Below are positions 7,405 through 64,000 of a stretch of 64,000 nucleotides of DNA, one piece after another (position 1 is the stretch's first letter; the number at the start of each line of letters is the position of its first letter). A model generated the notes under the pieces. It worked only from the letters and a program-made list of their open reading frames with translations. It did not search any database and was not told the DNA's origin. The stretch is from Podarcis muralis (taxonomy: Eukaryota), in assembly GCF_964188315.1 (NCBI RefSeq), contig NC_135659.1, positions 101,184,001-101,248,000 on the forward strand. The letters are read 5' to 3'. The position numbers were made by a program, and so were the translations under genes.

Positions 7405-7555
7405 CATGATTCTTCTTCCCCTCCTCATTCAGTCCTCACAACAGCCCTGTGAGGTAGGCTAGGCTGAGAGGCAGTGGCTGGCCAGTGAGCTTCATGGCTG
7501 AGTGGGGATTTGAACCCAGGTCTCTTCCAGGACCTAATCTGGGTCTCACTTTTGA
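7405..7555 (-). mobile_element. tRNA-derived (MIR/Squam-like) SINE fragment
   Basis: CCTCACAACAGCCCTGTGAGGTAGGCTAGGCTGAGAGGCAG core and a reverse B-box GATTTGAACCC; related copies at about 8535-8675 (+), 39400-39550, 41950-42100, 52740-52890 and 54240-54370. Confidence 0.7.
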
Positions 7556-10000: not shown

Positions 10001-10645
10001 ATCTGGTACGCAGGATGAGACCCTCCCTGCCCGCAGACTGTCTCACCAGAGTGGTGCATGCTCTGGTTATCTCCCGCTTGGACTACTGCAATGCGCTCTA
10101 TGTAGGGCTACCTTTGAAGGTGATCCGGAAACTGCAACTAATCCAGAATGCGACAGCTAGACTGGGGACTGGGAGTGGCCACTGGGACCACATAACACCG
10201 ATTCTGAGAGATGTGCATTGGCTCCCAGTATGTTTCTGGGCACAATTCAGATTGTTGGTGCTGACCTTGAAAGCCCTAAATGGCCTCGGTCCAGTATCCC
10301 TGAAGGAGCGTCTCCACCCTCACTGTTCAGCCGGAACACTGAGGTCCAGCGCCGAGGGCCTTCTGGCAGTTCCCTCATTGCAAGAAGCAAAGCTACAGGG
10401 AACCACGCAGAGGGCCTTCTTGGCAGTAGCACTCGCCCTGTGGTACTCCCTCCCACCAGATGTTAAAGAGATAAACAACAACCTGACATTTAGAAAACAT
10501 CTGATGGCAGCCCTGTTCAGGGAAGTTTTTAATGTGTGACATTTTGATGTATTTTAAATCTTTGTTGGAAGCCGCCCAGAGTGGCTGGGGAAACCCAGCT
10601 AGATGGGCGGGGTAAAAATAATAATAAATAATATTAATAATTATT
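10001..10645 (+). mobile_element. L2 LINE, 5'-truncated ORF2 C-terminus plus 3' tail
   Basis: ORF 9973-10539 with HALVISRLDYCNALYVGLP..KLQLIQNA, typical of L2 ORF2; ends in an (ATA/TTA)-rich tail; close copies at 18429 and 51428. Confidence 0.92.
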
Positions 10646-11280
10646 ATCTAGCCCACCCCCTGCAATGCAGGAATCACCATCCCTGGTCCCAGTTTCATCC
10701 TGCCCTCATGGCACTATGGCTCTGCCTTTGTCCCCTGCCCCATCCCTCAGTGACCCTTCCGATGAGCCTGGAGGGGGGGAGAACGTGAAGAAGGGTTAAT
10801 GCTGGGAATCCCTTTCTTAGCATGTTTGGGACTGTGGCTCCGTGGCAGCAGGAAAGCAGCCCTGGCCTGGCCAGGCAATTGCCCCTTCTTCCTCTCTGTG
10901 CCTCTGACCACCAGCGGCTCCCTCCGCAACTAATCAGCTAATCTCTGCTAGTACTTTAAGCAACCCTGGAATTTGTTCTTGCAAGGGCTGTTATGCAACG
11001 ACATGTGCTTGCTTCAGCCGCAGAGTGTGTGGGTTTTGCAGGCAGGTGGTCCCCAGTTCAGTCCCCAATGGCATCTCCAGTGGGGGCTGGAGGGGGCTCC
11101 TTTGCCTGAAACCTGGGAGAGGAGCAGGCAATGCTGAAATGGCTGGACCACTGCTCCAACGCTGCGCAAGGCAGCTTCCTGAGCCTCCTGTGCTCTTGAA
11201 CAGTGTCTTGTTCTGAAGGGAGAGAAATGGGTTTGGCGGTTTATAAGTTCCCCTCTCTGCCACTTTACTTCTCCACTGTG

Positions 11281-18428: not shown

Positions 18429-19158
18429 ACTGGACCAGGTGCGCAGCCTGGGAGTCATTTTGGACTCACAGCTGTCCATGGAGGCGCAGGTTAATTCTGT
18501 GTCCAGGGTATCTGTTTACCAGCTCTACCTGGTACGGAGGCTGAGACCCTCCCTGCCTGCGCACTGTCTCACCAGAGTGGTGCATGCTCTAGTTATCTCC
18601 TGCTTGGAGTACTGCAATGCGCTCTGTGTGGGGCTGCCTTTGAAGGTGATTCAGAAACTGCAACTAATCCAGAATGCGGCAGCTAGACTGGTGTCTGGGA
18701 GTGGCTGCTGGGACCACATAACACCGGTCCTGAGAGATCTGCATTGGCTCCCAGTACGTTTCCGAGCACAATTCAAAGTGTTGGTGCTGACCTTGAAAGC
18801 CCTAAATGGCCTCAAAGGCCCAGTATACCTGAAGGAGCGTCTCCACCCCCATCGCTCAGCCCGGACACTGAGGTCCAGCTCTGAGGGCCTTCTGGCGGTT
18901 CCCTCACTGCGAAAGGCCAAGTTACAGGGAACCAGGCAGAGGGCCTTCTCGGTGTTGGCACCCGCCCTGTGGAACGCCCTCCCATCAGATGTCAAAACGA
19001 TAAACAACTACCTGACATTCAGAAGACATCTGAAGGCAGCCCTGTTCAGGGAAGTTTTTAATGCATGACATTTTAATGTATTTCTAATCTTTGTTGGAAG
19101 CTGCCCAGAGTGGCTGGGGAAACCCAGCCAGATGGGCAGGGTATAAATAAATAAATAA

Positions 19159-38900: not shown

Positions 38901-40100
38901 ACGAAGCCGTGGGGCTCAGCAACCTTTCCAAGGGGGCTAGGCGGATTCAGGGAGGAGGAGGAGGAGGAAGAGGGCTCTCGATGGCGCCTCGCCAGGATGG
39001 CTCTGTCTTGCCTCCCCAGTGGAGGCCGGAATACCAGTTGCTGGAAGCCACAGGAGGGGAGAATGGGGCTCTTGCGTTGGAATCCATCTAGTTCGCCCCA
39101 GGGAGAAGAGGATTGGGGACTAGATGGGCCCCCGCTTTGGCCTGATCCTGCAGGCTCTTCTTATGGCCTCCTGAGACAGCGCCCTGATGCCCAGGCAGGA
39201 GCCTGGATGTGACCCAGCCGAACTAGCCATGGGAAGGCCCAGCAGTAGAGACAAACCGGGGAAATGAAGAATATATTTCCACTTCAGAATATGCGTAGCT
39301 TCCCAGAGTTTCTTCAAGGGGAGAAAAAGGACATTTTCCTTCTTTTTTTTATTGTAGTGTATTGACATCCCACCTTTTACTCCAAGGAGGTTGAGGTGAT
39401 GCAAAGCCCCCCCCCCCCAGTCTAATCCCCCCAACAACCCTCTGGGGTAGGTTAGGCTGAGGCAGCGACTGGTCCCCAAGGTCACCCAGTGAGCTTCATT
39501 TCCGAAAGGGAGATTCGAACCCTGATCTTAGTCTGACACTGTAACTATTATGCCCCACTGGCAAAGGGCAAGGTTTTTTTTGTTTTTTAAAGAATATCTT
39601 ATGCTGCCATTTCCTCCATTTTTAAAAAAAGCAATGTTTTGATATAATAATGCTGCAAAATTCCTAGACCTGCAGGTTCATGGTAACCATCTGAGACCTG
39701 CCAAGTCTTACAGGGATGCAGGCAGCAGCTGCTTTATACCGTGCCGTCTAGTGTAGTATTGTAGACACAGGCTGGCAGCAGCGTTCCAGCGTTTCAGGAA
39801 GAGGGCACCCCCACGCCTGCCTGGGGATGCCAGGACCACCAGGGGCTGAGCCTGTGCCCTTCTGCATGCACAGCAACCAGGAGGCTCGTCTTATGCTTTT
39901 GTGGAACCTCCAAGCCCAGAGACAGCCTACCTGCGTCTCACCGGGGGGAAAGGCAGGGAATCTCATTTAGATTCTTAGGGTGAGAACAGGTTGCTGGACG
40001 AGGCAGGGCATTGGCCTGGCCCACCGGGGCTCTTCTAATCTTCTTGTGTTGTGCTCTCTCTGCCCCCCACGCAGCCAGGCTCCCCTCCTCCAAGGCCGCC

Positions 40101-40868
40101 ATGTCCCCTGGCAAGGCCAAAGCGGGGGCCCCCCAGCCGCTGGTCTTCGCAGCCCATGAGATGGAGTGCAAGATCTGCTACGAGAGATTTGACGGGCGCG
40201 GCCGCCGCCCCAAACTGCTGAGCTGCCGCCACCGCGTCTGCGCCCGCTGCCTGCGCAAGATGGTGGAGGTGGGCGAGCCGCCCGGGACCCTCAGCTGCCC
40301 CTTCTGCCGCCAGGAGATGCCCCTGCCGCCGGACAGGGACGTGGGGCGCCTGCAGGACGACGGGCAGGTCCTGGCTTTGCTCAGCTGCCGCGAGAGGGCC
40401 CGGAAGCAAGGAGGGGGCGCCAGGGCCGGGGGGGCGGCCCCCTCCCCGGAGGTGCTGTTGTGCCCCAGCGTCCTGGAGCCCTTTGCAGAGGGCGGGCACA
40501 GCTCCTCCTCGGACTGCCTGGTCATCACCCTCCTGGAGGTGCCCGAGGACATGGCGGCCCCGGAGGGGGTGGGGGTCCTGGACGTCATGCGCCTCTACCG
40601 CCCGCCCAGCCTGGCCTCGCTGCCCTGCTACGGCCCCCTGGGCAAGTGCCAGCCCTGCGCCACGTGGCGCGCCTTTCCGCGCTTCCTGGTGGGTGTCCTC
40701 TGCCTGGTCTACTTCAGCTCTCTGCCCTTTGGCATCTACCTCCTGCTGGTGGAGCGTCTCAACCTGGGCATCGTCCTGGTGAGCCTCGTGCCCTCCACCC
40801 TCATCCTCTGCGTCTTCTACAGCCTCTGCCAGTGCTTCTGCCACGAGATCTTCGACTTGCCTTCTTGA
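40101..40868 (+). CDS. RNF182-like RING-HC E3 ubiquitin ligase with two C-terminal TM helices, 255 aa, single coding exon
   Basis: Branch point CTAAT at about 40035, pyrimidine tract and AG at 40073-74, Kozak GCCGCCATG at 40101. RING ECKICYERF..PKLLSCRHRVCARCL..CPFCR; SSDCLVITLLEV and YFSSLPFGIYLLL..LGIVLVSLVPSTL..CQCFCHE match recalled RNF182 (TSSNCLVITIMEV; YFSSLPLGIYLL; CQCVCHE). AATAAA at 42596 and 42605. Confidence 0.9.
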   Translation: MSPGKAKAGAPQPLVFAAHEMECKICYERFDGRGRRPKLLSCRHRVCARCLRKMVEVGEPPGTLSCPFCRQEMPLPPDRDVGRLQDDGQVLALLSCRERARKQGGGARAGGAAPSPEVLLCPSVLEPFAEGGHSSSSDCLVITLLEVPEDMAAPEGVGVLDVMRLYRPPSLASLPCYGPLGKCQPCATWRAFPRFLVGVLCLVYFSSLPFGIYLLLVERLNLGIVLVSLVPSTLILCVFYSLCQCFCHEIFDLPS

Positions 40869-44816: not shown

Positions 44817-47800
44817 TCAAAGAGCCCCCCTGCCGGGCTGGGCACTGGTGGCCAGTTCAGCCACACGCCAGATCTTGGGCTTGGCGGGCAGCTCCTGCGC
44901 CTCAGCAGTGGCTGGCAGAGGAGATGGAGGCAAGCCTTGCCACCGCCCGGCCTTCAGCCAAGGGGCCGCTGTTTCTGCCAGAGAGCCATTCTGGGGGAGC
45001 TTTGTCCTCGTCGGAGGGGTGCTGGGGGCTGCTCTTTCTGCGCCGGCCTCTCCCTCGCTGTCCTCCTCTTCCTCCTCCACCTCTCCCTCGGCCTTCGGGG
45101 CCCGGGGCGCCCAGCAAGCCCGGTTCTCCTTCTTGAGCCTCCGGCGGGCGTTGGCGAACCAGGTGGAGACCTGCGTCAGGCTCATCCGGCTGACGATGGC
45201 CAGCAGCACCTTCTCCCCCTTGCTGGGGTAGGGGTTCTTGGGGTGCTGGCCCAGCCAGGCCTTGAGGGCCGCCGTGCTCTCCCGGGAGGCGGCCGCCTTG
45301 CCCCGCGACGGGTCCTCGGGGGTGCCTGGCCGCAGGAGGGGCGAGTAGAGCAAGGGCGCCGGCCACAGCAGGGGGGGTCCGCCAGGCAGCTCGCAGGGGG
45401 CGGCAGAGACCTGGAGCACACAAAGGCAAGAGCAGCTGTGAGAAGCAGGAACCCCAAACAACTCCGGGTGTTGCAGGAATTTATGTATAGGTTGGGGGGG
45501 GCATTGCCCCTCCAGCAGATATCATGCACATGCAGCCCACTACCAATATCAGCACAATCACTTTTGTGATTTGTCCCCACAAAACACTCCATCACCGTTT
45601 CTTCCTATCTATTCAAAGGGCCTCTGCTGCACAATACCAAATGTAAGAATTCACTGATCAATGTATCTCTGTACTGGCTCACTGGGAAAACTTCAGAAAT
45701 TCCTATAGACATGTGAGCTCAGCTCCTCAGCAGCCCCTCTGCCTGAGGGATAATCCCTGGCATCCTGATACCTGAGTGCCAGACAGGTAGCCATTCCTGA
45801 ACTAACAAACCCAGGTGAAGACCAAAGGGTGGGATTAACTTGGCTGGGAAACAGGGAAATGTAAAGATCTCTTTTGCTCCACTTGATGGGTGTTTGGTGG
45901 AGGGCAAGGGGAACCATGGGGCAGGGTCCAGGATGCTCAGATTCCTGCCACCAGACCTCCCCTTTCATGATGTAACCATGATGTATGAGTGATGTAGTCT
46001 GGGGGGTGGGTGTAACATGGGGATTAAAAAGGTAAAGGGACCCCTGACCATTAGGTCCAGTCGTGGCCGACTCTGGGGTTGCTCATCTCGCTTTATTGGC
46101 CGAGGGAGCCGGCGTCCAGCTTCCGGGTCATGTGGCCAGCATGACTAAGCCGCTTCTGGCGAACCAGAGCAGCACACAGAAACGCCGTTTACCTTCCCGC
46201 CGGAGCAGTACCTATTTATCTACTTGCACTTTGACGTGCTTTTGAACTGCTAGGTTGGCAGGAGCAGGGACTGAGCAACGGGAGCTCACCCCATCGCAGG
46301 GATTCGAACCGCCGAACTTCTGATTGGCAAGTCCTAGGCTCTGTGGTTTAACCCACAGCACCACCTGCGTCCCACAACATGGAGATTAGCAGCTAATAAA
46401 AGTTTGGGGGCTCTTTTGTTGGGGGCTTCCATCTCCTTCCACCTTGTGGCAGGTGGGAGTCCTGTCTCGACTGTCTTCAATCAAGACCAAGCCTACTGGC
46501 TGCTGTTTTGCTCTGGTATTCCTGGCTGGTGTCCTTGTTTTTGGTCCAAGGGAGCCCTCAGATTTCTCCGTTAACAGGGAAATGTTGGCTCCTCCAGTCT
46601 GCTCTGGCCCCCTGCATACTCCCCCACATTTCGGGAGGGCAAATTGGGGCACACCCGCACCATCCTGCCACCCCTGTCACTTGCCTGCTCAGCCCCAAGA
46701 CCACTGCCCACCCAGCCCCTCCCTTACCTGCCTGCCCCCTTCACCTGCTGCCTCCTGCCGCTGCCACTGCAGCCTCCCAGAGGTGTTTTGGTCCCACCCT
46801 TTGATGATTCCCAAAGCGATCCCGGAAGGCTCTCTGGTGCTCGCCAGCACAACCCTGCTGACTCGCGCCAGGGTGCCCGTCTTAAACAGGACATTCCGGG
46901 ATCCAAGGCAAAGCCAGAATTGGCTTTTGTGATCCGGGATGCCCTGCTTAAAACAGGACACTTGTCCCTGCTAGAGGAAAGAAGCATGCCTGGATGCAGG
47001 CTGAGTCAACGACAGAAGCCTGTACAGAAGAAAGAGACAGAAATTGAAGTGTGCTTGAAATGTGGCCCATGCAATGGAAACCTGCTCCACCCTGAAAGCA
47101 AAGGCAAGCAGAGAAAGGTTGTGGCATATGGGACGTTTTGGAGAAAAGGCATGATGGAAATTAATGGATGCTTTCTCTGCCCTCCTGAGTGGGGGTCCAT
47201 CTGTCCTGGAGGGCATCCCTCTCCCCCTAAAGGATGTGGGGTGCTCTTGGGTCCAGCCTTGCCACTGGGGCTGCAGCTGCCCTCAAGGACCTCGGGGTCC
47301 TTTCATCAACTTTGACCTCTGCACCAACCCTGGCTCTACCAGGACAGAGTTTGTTCTGGTTATTCACACTCTGGGCCCCTCCTGCTTGAGTGGGGCGGGC
47401 AGAGCTTTGCGGATGGTGCTGCCACATTTGCTGAGGTCGAGAGGCGGGCACTGTGCCCCCAAGGGGCTTTGCTTCTTCAGCTCTGCTGCCTCCTCTTGTT
47501 TTCTGCTGCTATTTTTAGTCCCATCCCAGCGTTTCTCCTGCCTCCCAGAAAAGGCCCCTTCCCTGTCTGGTTGAGAAGCCACCACAAGGACTCCCGCTCT
47601 GCAGATATTTTTAAACATCTCCAGACCAGAGAGAGGAGCGCCTGTCATGCAGCCCAGGGCTGGGAGGAGCGGGCTTGAGCTGCGTCGATGCCAGCCTGCC
47701 CACTGTGCCAGGCTGTGTACGTTTGCCATCCTGCGTTTCTTCTTGCCACAAGGGTGGCTTGCCTCCTCCTATAGCCCCTCAAATCATAGCTGTCAACTTT

Positions 47801-48139
47801 TCCCTTTTCTTGCGAGGAATTCTATTCGGAATAAGGGAATTTCCCTTAAAAAAAGGGAAACATTGACAGCTATGCCTCAAATGGGGGGGAACTTGGCGCA
47901 AAGAGAATTAGGACAGAGAACATGAATCCCAGGCAGAGGCAGGACTCAGGAATGGGACACCTGTGCTGCATGCAGAAGGCCTTTCTCCCCATCCCTAAGA
48001 ACTCATGAGGAAGATCTCTGGAGGAAGCTGGGGTGGGGAGGAGGTTTGGGACAGTCCTCTTGGTCTCTGGAGGGGGTGATGGCACAAGTTTGGGAGGGTC
48101 AGTCTGGATGATGCCTTGACTCCCTTCCAGCTCTGGGGA

Positions 48140-48187
<48 letters not shown>

Positions 48188-50373
48188 TAAAGGGCATGAG
48201 AGCAAGCTCCCCCAACTAGGTAGTGAATTTGGCTGAGCAGTTAAGCATTGCAATTAGTACAAGCAAAGAAGCTGCTCTGTGCCTTCGGGCAAATGGCCAT
48301 TGGGCCTCCCCCCCCCCCCCCCCCCCGGCGGCTAGGAAGAAGCAGGCTGGAAGCTGGAGACACAGAGACATCTCCAAATATCTGAAGTGCTGCTGTTCCA
48401 TGCAAGACACAGAAGCTTGATTTTTTTTCTGCTGAGGACCAGGAACAACAGATTCAAATGACATGAAAAAGCCATTTGACAGAGGAGCGGTCTCCCTTGG
48501 AAGGTGGTGGACCAGGGGTCAGGGGGCTGGACTATATTTGGGGGGGGGGGATGAAGGAATTCTTATACACCAAAAATAACCCAGAGATGCATTTTAAATA
48601 AAAGCACACATTCTACTCATGTAAAAAGACGCTGGTTCCTGGAGCGTCTGCAGGCCAGATTGAGAAGGCGATTGGGCCGGATCTGGCCCCCGGGCCTCCC
48701 CATGTGGTGGACTCTTTCTTTGGAGGTTTCTAAGCAGAGATTGGATGGCCATCAGTCATGGATGCTTCAGTTGTGATTCCTGCATTTCAGGGGGTTGGAC
48801 TAGATGACCCTCAGGGTCCCTTCCAACTCTTCCGTTCTATGATTCTATGAAGGGAACTCGTGAGGGCGTCTCCTGCAAGCCAGTCTGACCCCACCCTTGC
48901 CCGCACCCCACCTGAGATCTGGTGCCAGTGGCTGCCTGGCCTTTGTTTGACAACCTGCCCCCCAACGGCTGGCCCCATTGCTCACCCGCCCCCCCCCCGG
49001 CCTGCTCTGCCTGCCTGCTACCTTCTCCCCTGAGCAATATTCTCCCCATAAGTTCCTTCTCCTCACGCTTGGCACCCCCCAGCCACAGGTAAGCAGCTCC
49101 AATGAGCTCCCACCTCAGAACTGATGGAGATTTGCCAGGTAGGAACACAGAGACATGGGATGCTGGCTTACATGGGTGTAGCCAGGAGTTTTGTTAGGGG
49201 GTGCAGAACCTCAGTTAGCTATGCATTTTTATTGATTTAGGGGGGGGCAGCTGTCCCTCCCTCCCCCCCCCGCTACGCCCATGCTGCTTTACACGGAGAC
49301 ATTGGTCCAGCTTTCCCAGTATTGTCTGCACTGGCTGGCAGCAGCTGTTGAGTTTTTCAGGCAGAGGTGCCTCCCAGCCCTGCTAGGAGATGCCGTTGGG
49401 ATTTGAACTCAGGACCCTTTGCCTGCAAGGCAGATGCTCCACCAGCTGAGCTGCAGCCCTTCCCCAAACGTAGGAGTTCTATTTTGAGGCCATCGATGCC
49501 TGAAAACCTTCATGAGCCTTGCATCTATTTCAGAAGGGCCAAAAGGAAGGAGTCCAGGACTATGAAAAGAATTATTAGCCAAGGACAATTAAATGTAATA
49601 TAGAAATTAAGAAATGCAGAATAAGTGATAAAGAACAGAAAAGCATCAGAGGCATTGATGGAAGTCTAAAACATTGTTTAAGATGAGAAGATATGTTGTA
49701 TGGCTGTTGGAAGTGATATGTTAAAAAATTTAAAAAATGCATATATATAAAAAGAAAGGAGTCCAGAATGGACACATGGAAACAAAAAACGCCAGACGGA
49801 CACATTCGGAAAGAACAAAAGAAGTCTGGTGGGCAGTTAATCTGCGGGACTCCCTGCTGTTTGGTTGCTGGCGCTGTTAAAAGAGGAGGAGAAAGGCAAG
49901 TGAATTCTTTTATGATTCCAGCAAGTGTGTCACTAGCCTGAGGGCTGCTGGAAGCAGTAAAGCGCAGAGGACCTGAGTGGTCCTGGAAGCTTTTCAGCAC
50001 CAAAAGTTACACCTTCTCCCATGCAACTGAGAGAGGGAGAGAAGAGTCTCGCCTTCAGAAGGTGTTTGGCCCAGCCAGTCCCACCCATCTTTCAAGCCCC
50101 CAGGGGCTCACCTGGGCCCAGCCCCTCGCTCACCTCAATGCAACATAGAACGCCCCCCTCCATGCCCCCCCAGTGCCTGGAGTCACTTACCGGCTGGGCG
50201 AAGAGCCCCAGGGGCGGTGGCTGCAGCAGGCTGTAGCAAGGGAGAGCAGGGTAGGCGCAGGGCAGGTGGGGCAGCAGAGGGGGCAGGGGGGCAGGCGGGG
50301 CCCCTAGGGGACACCAAAAGCCCTCCGCATCCCCACTGCCCACAGGCGTCTCTTGGGAGGGTGCTGAGGCCAT
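44817..50373 (-). CDS. IRX7: Solitary Iroquois-class TALE homeobox gene, irx7-like, two exons, 258 aa
   Basis: Exon 1 50373-50191 (MASAPSQE...[23 protein letters not shown], donor GTAAGT, phase 0). Exon 2 45410-44817 with homeodomain [55 protein letters not shown], an acidic tract and IRO box [31 protein letters not shown] and KKENRACWA resemble recalled zebrafish irx7 (AEDPGRVAK..RESTSALKAW; KKENRVSWA) more than Irx1-6. Irx family certain; irx7 orthology is inference. Confidence 0.85.
46027..46375 (+). mobile_element. Full-length Sauria/POM SINE in the Irx intron
   Basis: Head AAAGGTAAAGGGACCCCTGACCATTAGGTCCAGTCG; near-TSD AACATGGGGATTA / AACATGGAGATTA. Confidence 0.88.
49171..49283. mobile_element. 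Small hAT-type MITE in the Irx intron
   Basis: TIRs CATGGGTGTAGC / GCTACGCCCATG; decayed 8-bp TSD CTGGCTTA / CTGCTTTA. Confidence 0.6.
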
Positions 50374-50419
50374 GCTGTGCAAGAGTGGCTCTGGGGCGGG
50401 AGAGGCTGCGCTTGGGGGA

Positions 50420-50425
50420 TTTATA
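50420..50425 (-). promoter_or_regulatory. TATA box of the Irx gene
   Basis: Minus-strand CCCTATAAATCC; the TATAAA ends 47 nt upstream of the ATG at 50373. Confidence 0.7.
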
Positions 50426-51427
50426 GGGGCAGAGAGGTGAAGGGCAGTTGATTAGGGGCATTAGCAGACAGCGGGCACAGCTTACTTTAAAGGGGCAGCG
50501 TCAGGATGCTGCAGTTGGAGGAGCAGAGCCTTGTGCCAGAAGCTGGATTCTCACTCGCCGGAGCGGCTGCCTTTGCCACACGTCCTGGAGGGGTTTAAGG
50601 ACCCCCATCGCAGCCCCCTCCCTGAGCTCATGCCTGGTTACAGCAGAGCAGGACTGGGGTGGGGGCTGCTCTCTTTCCCCACAACAAAGCACTAGGAAAC
50701 GATTAGATGGGCACAGGATATTGGCTGCCCAATAATGATGACCAAATGGGAAAATCTTTGGAGAACAAATATGAAATGTATGGCGTGTCAAGGAAAATAT
50801 GTTAAAGATGCAGCATGGATGGTACCTCACCCCCTCAAGACTATCTAAGATGTACAAAAATTTAGGTACTAGGAAACCTCTGGGTGCTCCAGGCCTGGAG
50901 AGGTGGACAAAGAACCTCGTTTGGACTGCGGTTCCCCTTCTAAGTCTTGGCTAAAGAGCATGCGCAGAGTGCTACTCCCTCGTTGGTGGAACAGCTGCAT
51001 TGGGTCCCCAGCTGAGTCGCACGGTGGTCATGGGGGCAATTCACTTCCAGGCCAATGAGATGTAGTTTCGAAGGAGGTTTGGGCAGGTCTGTCTGCATGA
51101 TGCCCCGAGTCCCTTCCAGTCCTGGGGGTCCTGGACGCAGGGAGGGTTAGAATCTAATGGGGGATTCTATCGTTAAACTAGTCAGACAATTTTATTTTGG
51201 TAAGACAATGTCCTTGGCTGGCCACTTAAGTGTCCTCATCCACATCCCAAAAGAATGAGTCAGGTTGCAGGAGCCACAACTAAGGGATGGGACCTTCCAG
51301 GCTAACAGGTGGGCCTTTCCTTCACCACCCCTCCTACCTAGCTGCCAGGTATAGGAGAACAAGACCCTGAGAGTTGAGCAAGAGCTGAGCTGGAGACCCA
51401 GAGACCTGCTTGCTCTGTGCTGGATCC

Positions 51428-52043
51428 AAAGCTGAGACTACGCAGGATGAGACCCTTCCCGCAGACTGTCTGGCCAGAGTGGTGCATGCGCTAGTTATCT
51501 CCCACTTGGACTACTGCAATGCACTCTATGTGGGGCTACCTTTGAAGGTGACCTGGAAACTACAACTAATCCAGAATGCGGCAGCTGGACTGGTGACTGG
51601 GAGCAGCCGCAGAGACCGCATAGCACCGGTCTTGAAAGACCTACATTGGCTCCCAGTACGTTTCCGAGCACAATTCAAAGTGTTGGTGCTGACCTTGAAA
51701 GCCCTAAATGGCCTTGGTCCTGTATACCTGAAGGAGCATCTCCACCCCCATCGTTCTGCCCGGACACTGAGGTCCAGTTCCAAGGGCCTTCTGGCGGTTC
51801 CCTCACTGCGAGAAGCCAAATTACAGGGAACCAGGCAGAGGGCCTTCTCGGTGGTGGCGCCCACCCTGTGGAAGGCCCTCGTCAAAGAGATAAACAACTA
51901 CCTGAAATGTAGAAGACATCTTAAGGCTGCCCTGTTCAGGGAAGTTTTTAATGTGTGACATTTTAATGTATTTTTAATCTTTGTTGGAAGCCGCCCAGAG
52001 TGGCTGGGGGGACCCTGTCAGATGGGCGGGGCACAAATAGTAA

Positions 52044-52098
<55 letters not shown>
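51428..52098 (+). mobile_element. L2 LINE 3' part between the Sowah stop and the Irx promoter
   Basis: ORF 51410-51958 with HALVISHLDYCNALYVGLP; (TTA)n tail at about 52045-52098. Confidence 0.92.
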
Positions 52099-52099
<1 letters not shown>

Positions 52100-52560
52100 G
52101 GAGAAGCAAGATCTCCTAGAAGGATGTTGATGCTGTGACCCCTCCATCCTACGCTCAGGCTGTATCTATGTGTAAGTAAAACCATCTGTAAGTATATCCC
52201 AAAGACACTGGTCTCCGCTGACGTTCATTTCAAGGAAACCAAATCCTGGGTATGTTGCATCAAGGCCTGGAGTCCCTCATCTATTGGAGAGGCCTGGAAG
52301 AAGACACAGCCAGCCATGGAAGGAAGGGAGCTGGGTGGGGGGGGCAAAGTCTAAGGCTTCCCCAGCTCAGGAAGGGGGCGGGGGCTGGTTTCATTTATTT
52401 GTCTGTTGCATTCATACTCCACCCTTTTCTCTTTCCCCCCAATATATTTTATTAAAGCTTGAAAGGAGATATACAAAGATGAATACCAACTATAAAATAT
52501 CTTTTTAGAATACAAAAGGTAAAAAAACCGATTAAATAAAAACAAATACAAAGGAAGTAG

Positions 52561-52565
<5 letters not shown>

Positions 52566-52626
<61 letters not shown>
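52566..52626 (+). repeat. (GA)n microsatellite; others include (TG)n at about 27367-27400 and 48142-48186 and (GATA)n at about 56346-56390
   Basis: Directly visible simple repeats. Confidence 0.95.
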
Positions 52627-52631
<5 letters not shown>

Positions 52632-52938
52632 TGCTTCTGATTCTTCACCTCTTGGCTGTAATGTATATAGAAAGTTATTCAAAACATTTGCTCCATTTAG
52701 AGCCCCAAATTTTCCGCACAGCGCTCAAGGGGCCTGGCACGATTCTCCCCCCCATTTCCCCCTCACAACAGCCCTGTGAGGTAGGCTGGGCTGAGAGGCA
52801 GCGACTGGCCCCCAGTGCCACTCGTGGAATGACTGGAACCCTGGTCTCTCCCAGGTCCTGGTCCAATGTTCTAACCACTGCACCACCACTGCCTCTCCCG
52901 GAGCGAGAGGCTGGCCGAGTCCAGGGGCCTCTGTCTGT

Positions 52939-55342
52939 CTAGCGAGAGAACTTGCGCACGGCCCGGTAGCTGCCTGGGGGCGCCAGGCGCTGGGGGGTCT
53001 CCTGGGGCTCCTCTTCCTCCTCCTCTTCCGCCAAGTCGTTGGCTGAGCCCCATCTGCGCTGCGCTGGGTGGATGGTCCTGGGCAGGAGGAGGCAAGCCAG
53101 CTTCCGGTTCCTGCTCCGCTCCCCCCGGATCGGGCTCAGCTCTGGGGAGACACCAGCAGACCCCCCAGGGGGGCACGCTCACACAGATGGCAGAGTTGGA
53201 AGGGACCACCAAGGGTCATCTAGTCCAGTGTTTCCCAACCACTGTTCCGCGGCACACTAGTGTGCCGCGAGATGTTGCCTGGTGTGCCGCGGGAAAAATT
53301 AAAAAATTGAAAGATTTTTTTTTTTAAAGTCAAATTTTCGATTGGGGCGCCGTCACTAGATGACCCCTGGGGTTCCCTCCCTCCCTCCCGCTCTGCGCCT
53401 CCCTCCTCCTCCTCCTCCTCCGGGGAGGCCCTTCCTGGCTCTCGGCCAAGGCTTGGCGGCTGCCACTCACTCACTCGCTCGCCCACCCGTCCCTCCATTC
53501 CTGCACCCGGCCTCTCCCCCTCCGTCCCCGGCGCGGGGGCTGCCGGGATCCGTAGTCCCCTCGCCCTTGGGCTCCGCGCCCGCGCGGGGTGCGCAAACTA
53601 CGTTTCCCAGCGTGGCCTGGCGGGCCGGGCGTTTTGTTTGAAGTGCTCTTCTCCCGGCCATGGAATGAGCGCGGCGGCGGCGGCCGGGCGGGCAGGGGCT
53701 CTTCCGCGCAGACCCCGCGCAGCCTGCCTGCGCCCCCGCGGAGATCGGGCGGCAGGATGGAGGCCGGGGATCCCCACGGAGGCGGAGCGGCGGAGGCTGC
53801 CCCCCAGGTAGGGCTGCGTCGGGGTTTTTTTATTTTTGCAATGCTGCATCCACGCCGGAGGGGACGCATCGGACTGCGGGGAGACCCCTTGGCGGGCGTG
53901 CAAGGCAATGCATGCGTGCAGGCGTTGCATGGAGTGCAGTGCAATGCAATGGCAACGCGGCGCCCTGCATGCATGGATGCAACTTCCACCGGCGCTCCGG
54001 ACTTGGCAGGTGAGGGGGGTCCCCAGTGGGCGGCAGAGAGAGCCGGGAGGGCAAAGGGGAGCCGGGGAGGAGCAGCGCTGCTCCCCGAGCCGAGCCCGGG
54101 GGGAAACTTCGGCGTCGTTGCGCCGGGTGTTGGAAGCGGAGGCTGGCGGGGGCCCCTCACCTGCAAAACCTGGTCGCCTCTCATATATTTCGTGCATTGC
54201 ATTCATCGCCCGCTTTCTCCTCCAAGGAGCTCCCGGGGGCGCGCGTGGTTCTCCCCGTGTTATCCTCGCAACAACAGCCCTGCGAGGTGGGTCAGGCGAG
54301 TGGCACAAGGGAGCACCCAGGGATTGTCCTGGCCAGGTGGGGTGATTTGAACCCTGCTCTCTGCCCGGTCTTCGTCCTCATTTAGCCCTCACATGTGCAT
54401 GACTGTGCATGACTGAGGTTTTCCCCCCTCGTCTTGGCTATGGTGTGAGTCTGTGCTGTTAATTAATGGGGTTCTGCCTTCAGAGAAGATGAGCCAGGCA
54501 TCAAGGAGGTGATTATGTAATTTGCTAGCAATTCATGTCCCTCCCGGTGTGACGCTGCGCGCTGACGTCACGGGGCTGTAATGGTGGTGTGCCTCGAGAT
54601 TTTTTTCATGAAACAAGTGTGCCTTTGCCCAAAAAAGGTTGGGAAACACTGATCTAGTCCAACCCCACGTCCCTCCCCTCTCCCCAGAGGCCCTTCCGCC
54701 AGACAACCTAGAAGCTCTGGGAAGGGGGCTGCAAGCAAATCCCCTTTAGGGTCCCTTCCCCTCTTCCACATGCAAACAGGGAGCAGAAAGGGACCCCTCC
54801 CCACATATCTATGGGACCGCCTCTCCTGGTCTGCCCCACGGAGGACCTTAAGGTCCATGAATAACCATAGTTGAGAGGTCCCGGGCCCTAAGGAAGTCAG
54901 ACTATCCTCCACCAGGGGCAGGGCCTTTTCAGTGATGGCTCCGACCTGGTGGAATGCTCTGTCCCAGGAGACCAGGGACCTTCAGAATTTAACCTCCTTC
55001 CGCCGCGCCTGTAAGACAGAGCTATTCCGCCTGGCCTTTAATCTGAATTCAGCCTGATCTTTTCTTCCCCTTCCCTCCCTTTTTATGAAGATTACCTGCT
55101 CTGAGACCCCACAGCTAATTCTCTCCTGGTCTCCTCGCTGGCCCAAGTAGGACCAATTCAGCCAGCTAGCCCTGGGGATAATCTAATGCTTATTTCCCCT
55201 AAATTGATTTTTGAATTTTATTGTTATTCATGTTTTTATACTGTATTTTATGCTGCTTTTATAATTGTTTTAAAGTGTTTTAAATTTGTTGTTAGCTACC
55301 CTGAGCCCGGTTTTCGAACCGGGAAGGGTAGGGTATTAAAAA

Positions 55343-55386
<44 letters not shown>

Positions 55387-56346
55387 GAACATTCGCAGAG
55401 CCTGGCTGTCAGATGCTCCCAACGGGAAGACAACAATCAGGATTCGAACCCAAGAGCCACACTCTCCCCTCCTGTGTTTCCGGCAGCTGTGAAGCAGGAG
55501 CATCGCTGCCTGCTCCACCTCTGTGAATTTGTCCCATCCTCTTTCAAAGCCATCCCTGCTTCCTGTGGCAGGGAGTTCCGCAGTCTAACCCGGCGCTCCA
55601 CGTGAAGGACTTCCTTTGGCCCGTCCTGAACCTGCCCTCCCAGGCCGCCCTCCCTGTGGAGGCGCACGCAAAGGCAAGAAGGGGGGGGGCGCTGTTCTTA
55701 CGGGGTGGGGTGGGGGCTCCCTCCGGGGTCTCCACGCAGAGGTAGTGCTTGGCCAGGCGGCCACTGTAATCCCGCACGTCCTGGTTGGCACCTGTGGGGC
55801 GACAGGGAGCTGAGGTGCCATCGGGGAGGAAGAAGCCGCCCTTAAAGAGGGCCGACCCCTTTGGCAGGGAGGGAGGGAGGGGCGTGGATGATGTGGGGGG
55901 GGGCATGTCTTCCTCACCGTGGGTCCAGATGAGCAACTCCATCAGCCGCCGGTGGCCGTGTAGGGCAGCAATGTGCAGGGGGGTGTAGCCCTGGTTGGGG
56001 GGCAGAAGGAGGAAGAACAGGCCCTGAAGCACCTGACTCTGAAACTACCAGACCCCCCCCCAACCCCCCCAAAACGCGCTTTGCCCAGTGCCCCCTTGCC
56101 CTCTGGCACCAAGATGCCTGCACACAGCATGGAGACCTAATACTTTATGGGGAGTGGGGGGCGCCCCACCCGCCACCCAGACCCTCCCACCCCTGGGGTC
56201 TCCAGCAACCCTCCAGCAGGCTCTGCTCTCGGGGGCCTTGCTCACCCCCAAAGCGATGCCCCCCCAGGTCCAGCACCTCTGAATACTCACCCCCTGTGTG
56301 TGTTGCAGGAGAAAAGGGGCAGGAGGGTGGAGGAGAAGGAAGGATG

Positions 56347-56378
<32 letters not shown>

Positions 56379-59300
56379 TAGATAGATAAATAAATAAATA
56401 GATAAAATAATTAATAAAATAATATTATACCCTGCCCATCTGGCTGGGTTTGTGCAACTGGTTGTGCAACTGTGGTGCCCCCCACCCTGCTCCCACTTGG
56501 GCCCCCATGTTAAGGGGAGCAGCTCCACGCTGAAGCTGCAATTCCAGCCCTGGATGGTGCAGGACGCCCCCCCCCCCCAAAAAAACCACACCTATGGTGT
56601 TGCCCTTGTCTACTCACAGGGTCTACTCACATGCTTCGTGCAGAGGGGTCAGCATGGGAGGAGGAAGAAGGGGACATTTAGGGGAACCCCGAACACCTCC
56701 TCTCTCCCCAGGATTCGGGGGGGGGGCAAGCCCGCCTTGCTGCGCAGCCCCCTTCTCCCAGCCCTGCAAGGGACTCACCGCTCGCATGTTGACGTCGGCC
56801 CCGGCCCCCAGGAGGAGGGTCACCAGCTCCTCCTTGCCGTGCTTTGCTGCCCAGTGGAGGGCTGTCTGGGGGGAGAGCGCAGGGGGGTCACCGGGGGGAG
56901 CCTTCCTCCCCCCACCCAGCAAGAAAGAGGCAGCCCCCCTTCTGCCCACCCACTGAACCTCCCAGGAGCAGGAAAGGACGGAGGCTTGCTTCACACACAT
57001 CAGAAGAGCCTCCGGATCAGGCCCCAGGACCCTCTTCTCACAGGAGCCAACCAGAGTGTGGGGGGTCAGGTGGGATTGCTATGAGGAATTATGAAAAATG
57101 CAGCAAGCCATGGTGTCCGCGATGAAAGCATTGCTTGACTGGGCTTGAGTCACTGGCAATAATTTCTGATCAAATCCCACAAGCCTCTGCATCTCTGCCC
57201 CATTTTCTCCACCTGACAGGCATGTATAAGCATTCTGAAACACAGACCAGTTGCTTCACCATTCATCCTGGGCCAGAAAGATAGGAGGTAGATGTTGTTA
57301 ATCTTTAGGTAGATCTTAAGGGCCAGGAAGAGAGTTCACAAGGAGATGGTAAACACTATCTTTCCTTGCCTGTCCTTCCTTTCCTATTTACTGCCTGTTT
57401 ATGACCTCTGGGGTTTGCTAAATGCATTCCTCCTTGATTCCTGTTTTATGCATGCTCAAAGTAGTTATTTGCAGGATTTCTCTGATCTGACTTTGTCCCA
57501 TGTGGTAATTTTTTGAAATGCTCACAGGAAATCTGATTGGTTCGTACAAGTGCTGTGTAAGAGTTCTTTTAAGAGTTAATAAAACGGTTTGGACGAAGGA
57601 GTGGCTATTGGCCCTTCCTCCCAGAGTCTTGCTGGCCAAGCCTGGTGTGTATTTTATTAATCAGGGTCCAATCCTTCCTTTGCCTTCGGAACGCAACACA
57701 GGGGCCCGTCAGGGGAACCCCACAAGCAGTGCTCTCTCCTGCAGAGCCCTCCTCACTAGGAGCCCTTGAAAGCCCTCCGGTCCTCCCTGCCTTGCAGGCC
57801 TTTTCAGGGGCCTGGACTGACTCCAACTGCAAAAGCTGGGCTGGGCTGGGCTTGGGGTTTTTCTGCTGGCGGACAGTTGCTGCTTTGTATCTTTATTTTA
57901 GATATTACGATTTATGTGAAGATTGTTTAACTTGGTTGTGCACTTTTTGATATTTTATTTTTTGTTCATGACTACTTCTGCCATGTTTGTATTTCCGTCC
58001 CCCATCCCCCCCCCCTTGTAAGCCGTCTTGAGCACAGTTCTAACTATGGAAAGGTGGCATGCAAATAAAATGTGCCATATCGGTGAGCGGCTTACACTTA
58101 ATCCAGTGGGAGGGAGTTCCATAGTTTAACTCCACAATGTGAGATGAAGGATTCTGGGGAGGAGAAGGGGGCATTTAGGGGTAAGGGGAGGAAATCAGTA
58201 GTTGGGACCAAATACTTACAAACTGTGTCAGGTCAGGCAGCAGCAGCAGCAGCAGCAACCGTGGGAGAGAAGAAGAGTCATTAAAATCCCCACCCAGGAG
58301 AGACTCCAGTTCCCAGGGAGAACCTCCCCCCCCCCAAAAAAAAAGACGGTGGGAGGCTGTGGGGTGGGGGGGGGTCACAAGCAGAGAGCACCCCAAACCG
58401 AAAGAGGGGCAGTGTGCCAGGCAGGTGGGTGGCATTGGCGCTGGGTCTCAGAGACAGTGCCCATCAGGAAGGCAGACAGCCTGAGGCAGAAGGGACCCCC
58501 CCCCCAGAGCTACGCCAAGGCGACCTGACCCACGTGGGTCTAGACTTACCCCCTGAGCAGAGCGGGAGGAGAAGGGACAGGCGGCAGATTTGGCAATGGG
58601 GGAGGGAAACAGAGAGAAGGGAGCGTTAGAGCCACGCGGTGCATCCTGAAGCCCTCTGAACATGTGCAGAGTGTCACACCCACAGCCGGCACTCACGCAC
58701 CCGGGGCTGCAGTAGGGATCCCCCCCGATGGCTGGGAGGGTGGGGGGCAGAAACATTACAAGGGGATTTGGGCCCCCCTTCCACAAAGGACCCCAAGAGG
58801 AGGAAGATGTGGAGGCCCAACATGACCCTGCCGGGAGTCACAGGCTTAGAATTAAAGCACAAAGCGCCCCCCCCCTGTCTGCAATGGAGACCCCATTCCA
58901 GGGGGGAGCACCTGCCTGAACGGGGCCCCGTCTGCCAGGCTCACCCCCCCCCCCAGGCCTCAGCCCCCTTCCTGACCAGGTGAGACATGGTGGCTGGGGG
59001 GCAGCTGACCCAATTCTGCACTCTCCAGGTGAGGGAGGGCTGGCTGGCGGATCCAGGACCGCCGGCAATGTCTGGGCAACACAATGACCATGTACATATG
59101 CAATAAACGATCTTTTATAGAATTCCTTCAAACCATAACATTGCTGACGTTCTCGTTGCAACACAGGGGCTGGTTTGATCCAGGACCGCGGCTGCTTCTT
59201 TCCAAAGCTCCTTTTGTGTGGGCTCAGCCCCCCGAGAAGTCTTGGGCTCCCAAAGAAGAACATGAGAAGAGGCTGCAGGATCAGACCAGTGGCCCACCTG

Positions 59301-61498
59301 GTCCAGCATCCTCTTCTCACAGGGCAATCTACCCGGAAGAGAATTGTATTTGGAGGAGATAGCGCTCTAAGGTGGTTCCCTTCCTGCCTCTGTTTGCTTC
59401 CCCTCTCTATCTCTTGTTCAGCTCTTGGATGGCTGAAGAACAGCCTTTTAGTGCCCTAATCTGTAAGAAGGGAAGGAAGTGATATTGCTGGGTAGCTGCT
59501 TCTGATGTTAGACATTGTTTAAAGAAAGTAAGGCACTGAGAGAGGTGGCTAATGAATAATCTGTACATAGCTGGTAGCATGTAAGCAGTCAGGCAAGCCA
59601 CACAGGTTAACAGGTTAAAGGTAAAGGTACCCCTGCCCGTACGGGCCAGTCTTGACAGACTCTAGGGTTGTGCGCCCATCTCACTTAAGAGGCCGGGGGC
59701 CAGCGCTGTCCGGAGACACTTCTGGGTCACGTGGCCAGCGTGACAAAGCTGCATCTGGCGAGCCAGCGCAGCACACGGAAACGCCGTTTACCATCCCGCT
59801 GGTAAGCGGTCCCTATTTATCTACTTGCACCCGGGGGTGCTTTCGAACTGCTAGGTTGGCAGGCGCTGGGACCGAACGACGGGAGCGCACCCCGCCGCGG
59901 GGATTCGAACCGCCGACCTTTTGATCGGCAAGCCCTAGGCGCTGGGGCTTTTACCCACAGCGCCACCCACGTCCCATGCTAACAGGTTAGCTATCTATAA
60001 ATCGGAAGGTTTGGGTGGAGTTATTAGAAGCTCCTGCACGGACTGATTGATCGCAGGGCCCTGCAAACTGAGGCTCCCTGGGGGAGTCCCTTCGCCGCTT
60101 CTTGAGGGCTTCCCTGTGGCAGATCCAAGTGCTTGCTTGGTAATGTATGCAATGCTTGCTGTTTAGAAGAAAATCTTTAATCTTCTCACTCACTTGTGTT
60201 TGTCTGAATCTCATTGTAAAAGAACCGCCTGGCATTGGGCAAGACAGCCAGCCAGGCGCCCCTTGTGGGTCTGAGCCCCAGAGTACAAGATCAAGGACAG
60301 CGTTCACACTCACCGAGGTGAAATCCTGGAAGCAGCAGCCGGAGCGTCACGGGAGGGAGAGAAAAGAGGGGCTCAAGTCAGCACCCGGAGGGTGGCAAGC
60401 GCAAGGGAGCCCCTTCAGATGCAGGGAGATCCTAGAGGCAGACTGGGGTTTTTCCAATTTCAGCAGTGCCCTGTGCAGAACCCATTGACCCCGACCCCTG
60501 TCTCTTCCCTTCTGCTCAATTCATTACAGCAGAGTTGCAACGCCCTGCAGTGCCCCCCAGACTCAGCACCCAGAGCAGGGACGCTGGCGGAGGAAGAGGT
60601 GTGCGGGGGGAGCGCACCGCCCCCGGCAGCACGATCCCGGCGGTGTGCCATTGTTGCTGCTTCCCTGCCCACGCTGGGTGCCATGCCCCTATGGGGGGAA
60701 CCACACCCCCAAGACGCATGCCACACCCTTATGGGCGGTGTGCCATGCCCCCAGGACACACGCCATGCCCCCAGGATGCGCACCGGCCCCGCCCCGCCTG
60801 CTCTCTGCCCCCTGGTGCCAGAGCATGAAACTCTGCCACTGCGCAGGGGAACCGGTTGCGCTGCCCTAAATCCGCCTCTGGCACCCCCACCCCCCCCCCA
60901 ATCTAGCAGCAGGCCCTCCTTGGCAGAGGGAGGGGATGCTGGATGCCCAGGGCAGTTCTGCCCCTTCCTTGCAGGCCTCTGGACTCTCCCAGGCAGCGAG
61001 AACCAGCCGGCCTCAAGTCTTGCTCTCTTGCTGGGCTCTCCTGCCCTTGGAACCAGCCGGGGCTGGCCAAGTCGGGCACTGGCTCCGAGGGGCCCAGCCG
61101 CCGGGCGATCTTACCTTCTTGGAGGCGAGGGTGGGGTCCTGCTGGAGTAGGTGGCTGAGGGTGGCCACGTGGCCCCCGGCCGCTGCCTGCAGCCACTCCT
61201 TCTCCAGGGGCTCCAGCTGCAAGGAGAAAGACCCTCTCTCAGTCTCCCCACTGAGGCTCATTTCTTACGTTTTCTGTATGTTTTGACTGTGTTGCCTTTA
61301 TGGATTTGTGTTGTGAGTCGTTGTCTTAATCCAATAGTCCCCCTTCTTGCAGGATCTCCACCAGCCCCACACAGAGTCCCCTGTCTTCTCCCCAGAAGTA
61401 CCTGACCCCTTTCTGGCCCCATCACTCACCGCCACTGGGCTGGAGACCCCCGGGCCACTTCCACCCCCGTCGTCTGCGGCGTCTCGGTCCGACTGGGG
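52939..61498 (-). CDS. SOWAH: Intron-rich Sowah (sosondowah/ANKRD43 family) ankyrin-repeat protein; at least 11 coding exons; 5' part unresolved
   Basis: Exons 61498-61430, 61216-61115, 60325-60314, 58552-58550, 58222-58220, 56865-56779, 56633-56631, 56293-56291, 55990-55918, 55791-55702, 53141-52939. Spliced product: ..PVA|LEPLEKEWLQAAAGGHVATLSHLLQQDPTLASKK|DFTS|G|F|TALHWAAKHGKEELVTLLLGAGADVNMRA|H|G|GYTPLHIAALHGHRRLMELLIWTHG|ANQDVRDYSGRLAKHYL..|..RWGSANDLAEEEEEEE..RKFSR*. Matches the Sowah signature LEPLE.EW...DF.SGFTALHWAAK.G...N.RSHGGYTPLH.AALHGH...VRDYSG. The last exon is less certain. Confidence 0.9.
53226..54651. mobile_element. 1.43-kb non-autonomous hAT element with a CpG-rich interior in the last Sowah intron
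   Basis: Perfect 15-bp TIRs CAGTGTTTCCCAACC / GGTTGGGAAACACTG and perfect 8-bp TSD ATCTAGTC (53218-25 and 54652-59), splitting a minus-strand CR1 tail. Confidence 0.88.
54905..55385 (+). mobile_element. L2-like LINE 3' end with (TTA)n tail
   Basis: RAFSVMAPTWWNAL-like decayed frame; tail similar to the copy at about 4360-4640. Confidence 0.65.
59618..59979 (+). mobile_element. Full-length Sauria/POM SINE in a Sowah intron
   Basis: Head AAGGTAAAGGTACCCCTGCCCGTACGGG; 10-bp TSD TAACAGGTTA (59608-17 and 59980-89). Confidence 0.9.
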
Positions 61499-62807: not shown

Positions 62808-64000
62808 TGGATGCTTTAGTTGAGATGCCTGCATTTCAGGGGGTTGGACTAGATGACCCTTGGGGTCCCTTCCAACTCTACCATTCTATAGTTTGGGGCC
62901 TTTGGCAACATGCAACCTCTGATTTAGTGTCTTGGCAGAGCAAGCGGCCATCCTCACCCCACAGTTCTGAGGCAAGCCCACCGCAACTCCTTCTCCAGCT
63001 ACCCAATTTCGGTTCCGGAGCACTAGCAGCCCCAGAGGCCCCAGGAAACCTACCGGTGCCCCATCATCGCAGACAGTGACCAGGATCTGAGGGGCTGACA
63101 TGTCTCGCCAGCACGGAGACTCTCAGGAGTACCACAGCGACTGGACGGCTGGACAGATGTCCCGCTGGGGGCTGGTCTTCTGTGCCCCCTCCCACTTTGG
63201 AGCAGTCGCCACAGGAAGACGCTTCTCCTGCAAAACAAAACAGCTTTTCTAGCAAGACCCTCTTAGCTGTCCCCGGGCACAAATTTCCTATGCAGTTAAG
63301 ACCCCCGGCTCTCTTCCCTGTATTGACATTTATTTCAATACTTCATTTGTGGATTATGGGGATTTCTACCTAATCAGGGTGTTATACAAAGCAAAACAAA
63401 CAAACAAACAAACAAATTGTGCCAGAATGTGGCATCTGGGAACTCAAGGTCCTTAGACCGCTGATGCAGGTGTTCATCTGTTTTTAGTCTATGGCTGCTT
63501 TAACTTTCTAAAAGTTTCAAATTATTGTTTTTTGTTTTTTCCCCTAATTGATAATTTTATCATTTTCTTGTGAACTGCTTTGAGCTTTTCTTTTCCAACT
63601 GAGCATTGTACAGACAAGCTAAATAAAAAATAGAAAGAAGGCTGAGAGGGTTCACAAGTGCACGTGTGAATTAGGCGCCATGGATTAAGCACCATGGATG
63701 GGATAATCAGAAGGGGGGGGGGGGAGAGAGAAGGAAGTCGCCTCCTTCAGTGCAGCATCCTGTTTTTGTCAGCAGCGGATGAGGAGGAGGGCAGGGGCCA
63801 CCACAGCTCAGTTGCAAAGCATCCATCTCTGCTTGCAGGAGGCCTGGGACTCAACCCCCAATGGCAGCATGTCCAGGGAGGGGGGGGGAGACCCCTGCCT
63901 CCCACCCCCCACTGCCAGTCATTAGACAAAGGACTGACTTTCTACAAGGCAGCGTTTTACGTTCTCATTGCTTCGCCCCTTTACTCAGAATAATGAGGAC

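Follow-up and report, generated by a model that had tools for sequence, protein, structure and literature searches.

Evidence for an ancient Sowah–irx7 gene pair retained in the lizard Podarcis muralis and other sauropsids

Iroquois–Sowah blocks and the Podarcis locus

The block formed by Iroquois (Irx) genes and the ankyrin-repeat gene Sowah is a textbook case of gene order preserved by regulatory entanglement and of its possible release through retrogene replacement. The parental, Irx-linked Sowah was reportedly lost in tetrapods, where retrogenes replaced it. Papers up to 2022 repeat a tetrapod-wide dismantling: the block has been described as dismantled in 'all tetrapods' (PMC8793726, citing Maeso et al. 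2012) and the linkage as kept 'apart from tetrapods' (PMC5585340, citing Maeso et al. 2012), and the tetrapod loss and retrogene replacement of Sowah are also summarized in PMC5803294, citing Maeso et al. 2012. The gene irx7 was called a teleost-specific duplicate in 2023 (PMC10161429), and a 2025 review lists it only for zebrafish (PMC12702339). Here, we analyze a stretch of 64,000 nucleotides from Podarcis muralis (the window; NCBI RefSeq assembly GCF_964188315.1, contig NC_135659.1, positions 101,184,001 to 101,248,000), in which all Sowah and Irx coordinates lie on the minus strand. Sequence comparison makes it very probable that the window contains the P. muralis orthologs of an ancient neighbor pair, a parental, intron-containing Sowah and, 2.5 kb downstream on the same strand, irx7.

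A close counterpart is found in the moray eel Gymnothorax javanicus (GJAV_G00193450 / GJAV_G00193460), in which Sowah (78,995,421-79,028,367) lies upstream of irx7 (79,042,951-79,044,273) by 14.6 kb on the same strand. The eel and lizard loci are alike in their genes, strand, and order, in the series of Sowah exons that runs from B to the stop codon, microexons included, and in a two-exon irx7 interrupted by the same phase-0 intron. They differ in that the fish Sowah covers 33 kb, carries an N-terminal WHD_SOWAH domain, and is separated from irx7 by the 14.6-kb spacer, whereas the lizard gene covers about 10 kb in the window, begins at what in fish is an internal Met, lacks the domain, and has a spacer of 2.5 kb. 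The genes downstream of the pair also differ, with a TNFR-like gene in eels and a RING gene and PCIF1 in sauropsids. In many teleosts, Sowah and irx7 are found on contigs of equal length, which suggests that they share a chromosome.

More distant relatives of the locus show the same mixture of likeness and difference. The bilaterian block, represented by sowah and araucan/caupolican in Drosophila and by its amphioxus equivalent, resembles the lizard locus in that an ankyrin-type Sowah has been linked to an Iroquois gene over a very long time. In fly and amphioxus, however, the Sowah introns are large and include tested Iroquois enhancers, whereas the lizard introns are small, repeat-rich, and without detected conserved noncoding DNA. 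The SOWAHA-D genes share the family traits of a central ankyrin pair following an LxPxEKEW helix. According to the cited literature they are intronless and unlinked to Irx, whereas the lizard gene has 11 introns in the window at fish positions and abuts an Irx gene; it is by these descriptions that we set them apart. Irx1-6 have the TALE homeodomain and IRO box of lizard irx7 but form three-gene clusters, which the literature places in gene deserts, while lizard irx7 is a solitary gene of 258 amino acids and 2 exons in a gene-dense block. The gene linked to Sowah in the window is specifically irx7 and not a member of an IrxA or IrxB cluster, and a third Irx–Sowah block survives.

The advance is one of interpretation rather than of a new kind of system, in that a known block is retained where it was thought to be absent. 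An earlier note on the window, made from the DNA letters, had proposed that this lizard keeps the ancestral intron-containing, Irx-linked Sowah and that the dismantling was not tetrapod-wide. Clade membership, intron positions, and replicated adjacency support the first proposal, and the occurrence of the pair in lizards, turtle, and goose bears out the second. One parental Sowah–Irx pair persisted into sauropsids, some birds included, and the locus thereby refines the timing and completeness of the dismantling. Reptiles and birds also carry a seventh Irx gene that has gone undiscussed in papers, an unstudied homeobox gene for amniote developmental genetics. Public annotations already contain both genes, with misleading labels such as 'SOWAHC-like' and 'IRX-3-like'. 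Our literature searches combining sowah with irx7 and irx7 with sauropsids found no report of the pair, with the limit that Maeso et al. 2012 is known to us through citing papers and may mention such copies, and the papers examined from searches on irx7 in tetrapods or chicken describe no amniote irx7.

Orthology and structure of Sowah and irx7

Both orthologies, a conserved exon structure with four 3-nt microexons, a conserved order and orientation of the genes, and their intact reading frames are shown by the sequences compared. Inside the window, Sowah has 12 coding exons and 11 introns with clean AG/GT boundaries and mutually consistent phases, and it ends in a TAG codon at 52939-52941, in agreement with the earlier claim of at least 10 introns and an end at 52939. 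The TATAAA element of the Irx gene (50425-50420) is 2514 bp downstream of the Sowah stop on the same strand, which matches the approximately 2.5 kb previously given for a TATA box at 50425. A span of 44817-61498 had been assigned to the two genes together; its Irx end is correct, but its Sowah start is not, as exon X brings the gene to at least 63101 and its extent in the window to about 10 kb.

Database searches, for which single-exon peptides and database proteins served as queries and the 120 best matches inside a length band were listed, connect the lizard Sowah to an old vertebrate clade. The 66-residue exon G, compared by phmmer with 1.8 billion representative proteins, gave 15 matches, all ending in …WGSA-DL…Y(R/K)xVRKFSR; 12 of the 15 were identified and belong to lizards, tuatara, turtles, ducks, geese, a rhea, a caecilian, and the coelacanth. 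The coelacanth Sowah retrieves several hundred relatives from sharks, a chimaera, lungfish, caecilians, sturgeons, gar, and teleosts. Among the matches listed, ankyrin repeats together with WHD_SOWAH (PF25877, judged from precomputed matches and tblastn) are found on almost every member from fish, caecilians, and the coelacanth. Neither the exon-G search nor the listed Sowah matches, both of which cover predicted proteomes and not genomes, included a protein from mammals, frogs, snakes, or crocodilians.

In an alignment of 15 sequences, the sauropsid proteins are homologous end to end, from a P-x-I-x-VT motif to a nearly invariant C-terminal tail. The two central ankyrin repeats that follow the L-x-P-x-EKEW helix are present and align with those of coelacanth, shark, caecilian, and fish Sowah. 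This end-to-end alignment with the clade that carries WHD_SOWAH and ankyrin repeats sets aside membership in a non-Sowah ankyrin family, which the earlier note had raised as a way in which its proposal could fail. In a maximum-likelihood tree of 26 sequences, sauropsids are monophyletic (100/99) on a long branch (0.49) next to the caecilians, and the coelacanth, lungfish, cartilaginous fish, and ray-finned fish fall outside. The topology agrees with the species tree, which is what vertical inheritance of a single ortholog would produce. From this placement we assign the lizard Sowah to the parental intron-containing clade of sharks, coelacanth, lungfish, caecilians, and ray-finned fish, and one copy of the bilaterian Iroquois–Sowah block would thus have been inherited vertically into the sauropsid lineage.

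The exon structure provides a second line of evidence. Exons B, D, and E are identical in length and splice sites in the lizard, green turtle, and moray eel, and all exon boundaries from the LEPLEKEWL exon to the stop match those of the eel, including a 12-nt exon and four 3-nt microexons. The 12-nt exon and the microexons are kept in the same order and with strong donors in five species (lizard, eel, turtle, Pogona, and goose). Exon lengths, phases, and microexons therefore agree with those of teleost Sowah, which was the comparison of intron positions on which the earlier proposal turned. Because a retrogene could not acquire such an exon structure, the lizard Sowah is of the parental, intron-containing type. 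The caecilian Sowah spans 106 kb.

The Irx gene consists of two exons encoding 258 amino acids (50373-44817), and its exon-2 translation is 100% identical to P. muralis LOC144327878. Exon 2 matches Pfam Homeobox_KN (6.8e-15), and the IRO box near the C-terminus can be compared with that of gar irx7, KSKIWSLAETATS. The best non-sauropsid matches of exon 2, among the matches listed, are all annotated 'iroquois homeobox 7'. The distance from the single phase-0 intron to the downstream WFANARRR motif is 84 residues in two eels, 83 in Podarcis, and 82 in Pogona. Among the entries considered from the 2025 review table (PMC12702339 Table 1), zebrafish irx7 has 2 exons and is the only two-exon Irx, and the Irx6 entries beside it have 6-7 exons and about 390-550 amino acids. 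The lizard Irx gene adjoins the same Sowah ortholog as eel irx7 does, and because of this synteny we regard its identity as settled and assign it as the irx7 ortholog. A short irx7-like protein is present in many other birds.

Gene order in sauropsids and the persistence of the pair

The pair sits in a compact, GC-rich, gene-dense sauropsid block with the order ZNF335-like – Sowah – irx7 – RING gene – PCIF1. Pogona has a ZNF gene, Sowah, Irx, the RING gene, and PCIF1; the green turtle (Chelonia) has a multi-exon ankyrin gene, an irx7-like gene, the RING gene, and PCIF1; and the swan goose (Anser) has a ZNF gene, Sowah, Irx, and the RING gene, followed by a 708-residue gene at the place of PCIF1. 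This order is also that of the window, where RING is at 40.1-40.9 kb and the WW domain of PCIF1 at 24.4-24.7 kb. Sowah and Irx are 478 bp apart in the goose, and spacers in sauropsids range from 0.5 to 2.7 kb; the 2.5-kb lizard spacer (50426-52938) consists mostly of repeats and has no blastn conservation with turtle. The Sowah–irx7 pair is retained sauropsid-wide and is not a lizard peculiarity, and with the eel included, the microsynteny of these unrelated genes is deeply conserved across eel, lizards, turtle, and goose.

The Hawaiian crow (Corvus hawaiiensis) has a different arrangement, in which irx7 directly follows the ZNF335-like gene (7275-10001 of the locus examined) and is itself followed by the RING gene and a 711-residue gene in the PCIF1 position, the exons of which match the PCIF1 region of the window. 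Within birds, at least one lineage has lost Sowah and retained irx7, and goose versus crow offers a natural comparison of irx7 with and without Sowah. Exon B has a weak tblastx match within the ZNF gene of the crow, which we dismissed as chance. In human, PCIF1 and ZNF335 are, we presume, neighbors at 20q13.12. If that adjacency holds, mammals would have lost Sowah, irx7, and the RING gene there.

Several points weigh against reading the locus as an orthologous, functional pair derived from the ancestral block. No sauropsid Sowah model carries WHD_SOWAH (PF25877) among the precomputed matches, and the Sowah tree covers only members of the intron-containing clade. The length band left out the longer Irx1-6 proteins, which partly biases the best-match ranking toward irx7, and the irx7 assignment draws on gene structure and synteny. 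A blastn comparison of window positions 44-64 kb with the turtle, crow, eel, and bowfin loci (word size 9, E<1e-3) returned exons only and no conserved Sowah intron or spacer DNA, in a crude test that short or fast-evolving enhancers would escape. No Sowah exons were detectable in the 2.7 kb between the crow ZNF gene and irx7, which speaks against a strict regulatory dependency. Finally, the expression evidence consists of gene models. On our reading, Sowah and irx7 would both be expressed and functional.

With respect to the winged-helix domain, we read its absence as a lineage-specific domain loss in an ortholog and not as exclusion from the Sowah family. A tblastn search with seven winged-helix queries found the domain neither at 61.5-64 kb of the window nor in the full 4.2-kb ZNF-Sowah interval of Pogona and its goose equivalent; the Podarcis search ends at base 64000, beyond which further upstream exons may lie. 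In exon X, an in-frame stop is located 7 codons upstream of the Met of MSAPQILVT, and the same Met starts two other lizard Sowah models. Given the lack of WHD_SOWAH and the in-frame stop before this Met, sauropsid Sowah looks like an N-terminally shortened protein. Such a protein may work in its shortened form, with two ankyrin repeats and a conserved C-terminal tail but no winged-helix domain.

In an older NCBI model of P. muralis, 'IRX-3-like isoform X1', Irx exon 2 follows directly on Sowah exons X, A, B, C, the Phe microexon, and D. A few residues of the model depart from the window, probably through polymorphism, and the model represents either a real read-through transcript or a prediction artifact.

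As to why the two genes have remained neighbors, we lean toward passive retention in a compact region, by which the pair would have stayed together mainly through its tiny spacer and a location that rarely breaks. Alternatively, the pair may be a true genomic regulatory block, in which irx7 enhancers are located in the spacer or within introns of Sowah, or read-through from the Sowah promoter partly drives irx7. This would explain the linkage, and it has in its favor an order and orientation unchanged from eel to lizard, turtle, and goose, a sauropsid spacer of such small size, the chimeric NCBI model, and the precedent of fly and amphioxus (PMC12311624, PMC5010895). Against it stand the lizard–turtle blastn comparison that yields exons only, introns that contain obvious repeats and are filled with them, and a crow irx7 that persists where Sowah exons are no longer detectable. 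We consider a regulatory block of this kind rather unlikely.

The lack of conserved intron DNA and the loss of Sowah in crow argue that irx7 is independent of large conserved enhancer arrays inside Sowah, and intronic arrays such as those of the IrxA/B clusters would be a less likely cause of the linkage. Sowah introns had been predicted in the earlier note to be the location of Irx enhancers, and this expectation has no support so far, since the conserved-element comparison of lizard and turtle gave exons only. A weaker coupling is possible, in that the spacer is tiny and the chimeric model suggests read-through transcripts, and shared proximal regulation or read-through transcription may contribute to holding the pair together. 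Real regulatory coupling between Sowah and irx7 nevertheless seems to us doubtful relative to passive retention. We put forward only tentatively the idea that a third Iroquois–Sowah block, composed of irx7 and the parental Sowah, was retained by the amniote ancestor and continues to function as a regulatory unit in sauropsids today, with control elements of irx7 or read-through transcription tied to Sowah. If this were true, birds and reptiles would have a seventh, unstudied Irx developmental gene, and an ancient block would be open to experiment in duck, turtle, and lizard embryos.

It is improbable, in our view, that Sowah in this lizard is not a functioning gene but a truncated bystander in decay, heading for the loss that crow and, as we presume from the human map, mammals have already undergone. 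The lost winged-helix domain, the long sauropsid branch, and the loss in crow would be in keeping with decay. On the other hand, open frames, all splice sites, and the four microexons are kept across anciently diverged lizards, turtles, and geese, and the C-terminal tail has hardly varied. The ratio of nonsynonymous to synonymous substitution (dN/dS) of Podarcis versus Pogona, turtle, and goose is 0.27-0.42 for Sowah and 0.26-0.59 for Irx, values in which the synonymous distances are probably underestimated (GC-rich DNA). Sauropsid Sowah is fast-evolving yet constrained, and the pair is very probably still under purifying selection in lizards, turtles, and waterfowl. The remaining alternative, that the adjacency is an assembly or annotation artifact or a secondary re-association in lacertids, deserves almost no credence: GC-rich microchromosome-like regions are error-prone and one NCBI model is chimeric, but the same order in four independent assemblies from three sauropsid orders, among them those of Pogona, Chelonia, and Anser, together with the same orientation in a teleost, refutes for practical purposes the artifact that the earlier note had allowed for.

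Exon-level features, neighboring genes, and repeats

Exon X of Sowah, the first coding exon in the window (MSAPQILVTVCDDGAP, 63054-63101), has a gtaggt donor, and residues 1-16 of a P. muralis Sowah protein, which itself matches Pfam Ank, map to it at 100% identity; its P-x-I-x-VT motif aligns with fish and turtle Sowah. Exon A (61430-61498) encodes an acidic Gly/Ser-rich linker and was assigned by its splice sites, its frame, and a blastn match to positions 955-1027 of the turtle locus. The LEPLEKEWL helix preceding the ankyrin repeats is encoded by exon B (61115-61216; 102 nt, phase 0/0), which agrees with its turtle and eel equivalents in length and splice sites and is 58% identical to its caecilian counterpart. 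Exon C (60314-60325) is the 12-nt exon, encoding DFTS, and has an equivalent with a gtaagt or gtgagt donor in eel, turtle, Pogona, and goose. The first ankyrin repeat, with TALHWAAKHG, is found in exon D (56779-56865; 87 nt; Pfam Ank 6.1e-9), identical in length and splice sites in turtle and eel, and the second, GYTPLHIAALHGH, in exon E (55918-55990; 73 nt, ending in phase 1; Pfam Ank 3.7e-6), which has the same length in both species. Exon F (55702-55791) has 90 nt and phases 1/1, with 90 nt in eel, 93 nt in turtle, and the same phases. The last exon, G (52939-53141, stop included), encodes …WGSANDL…YRAVRKFSR and starts with the same split codon in turtle and eel.

The four 3-nt microexons are distributed over two introns. 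Between exons C and D, a Gly microexon (58550-58552) is the only AG-GGN-GT site and a Phe microexon (58220-58222) the only AG-TTY-GT site, each followed by a gtaagt donor. The Gly residue of the former occurs in Pogona, swan, and shark proteins; TTT with gtaagt is kept in eel, turtle, Pogona, and goose for the latter, and its F is also in the older P. muralis model. Between exons D and E, a His microexon (56631-56633) is the only AG-CAN-GT site, has a gtgagt donor, and is kept in eel, turtle, Pogona, and goose, and a second Gly microexon (56291-56293) is the only AG-GGN-GT site, has the donor gtgagtat, and is kept in these species as well. The four patterns thus occur in the required order of Gly, Phe, His, and Gly, once each per intron, and the residues that they encode appear in annotated Pogona, swan, Lacerta, and shark proteins. 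The beta-hairpin residues of both ankyrin repeats come from the 12-nt exon and the four microexons (56291-60325), and annotated isoforms use or skip these small exons in varying combinations.

For irx7, the TATAAA box (50420-50425), read directly, is about 50 bp upstream of the ATG (50373). Exon 1 (50191-50373) comprises 61 codons beginning with this ATG and ends in phase 0 at a gtaagt donor; it is conserved with green turtle by blastn, its peptide aligns with the N-terminus of the Pogona ortholog, and for these two reasons we take the exon to be real. Exon 2 (44817-45410) comprises 197 codons and the stop, with the TALE homeodomain at about 45305-45117 and the IRO box at 44882-44844. In the bowfin Amia calva, there are two tandem irx7-like genes of 323 and 338 amino acids, about 3 kb apart on the same strand (5471-6797 and 10001-11265 of the locus examined), one of which is labeled 'IRX1B, partial'.

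The RING gene and PCIF1 lie on the plus strand of the window. The RING gene is a single-exon gene (39984-40865, zf-RING_5 1.9e-7) between PCIF1 and irx7, in a position that is kept in turtle, crow, goose, and Pogona. PCIF1 (24429-32300) has exons matching crow PCIF1 to about 32.3 kb and converges on the 3' end of irx7. Large GC-rich open reading frames elsewhere in the window gave no Pfam matches and are probably not genes. One repeat-derived open reading frame (LDYCNALYVGLPL), without a Pfam match on the two copies scanned, recurs at 51389-51955 (+), 9913-10536 (+), 18654-19007 (-), and other positions. Copies of a tRNA-like short interspersed element are present in the Irx intron, in a Sowah intron, and shortly past the stop codon of Sowah.

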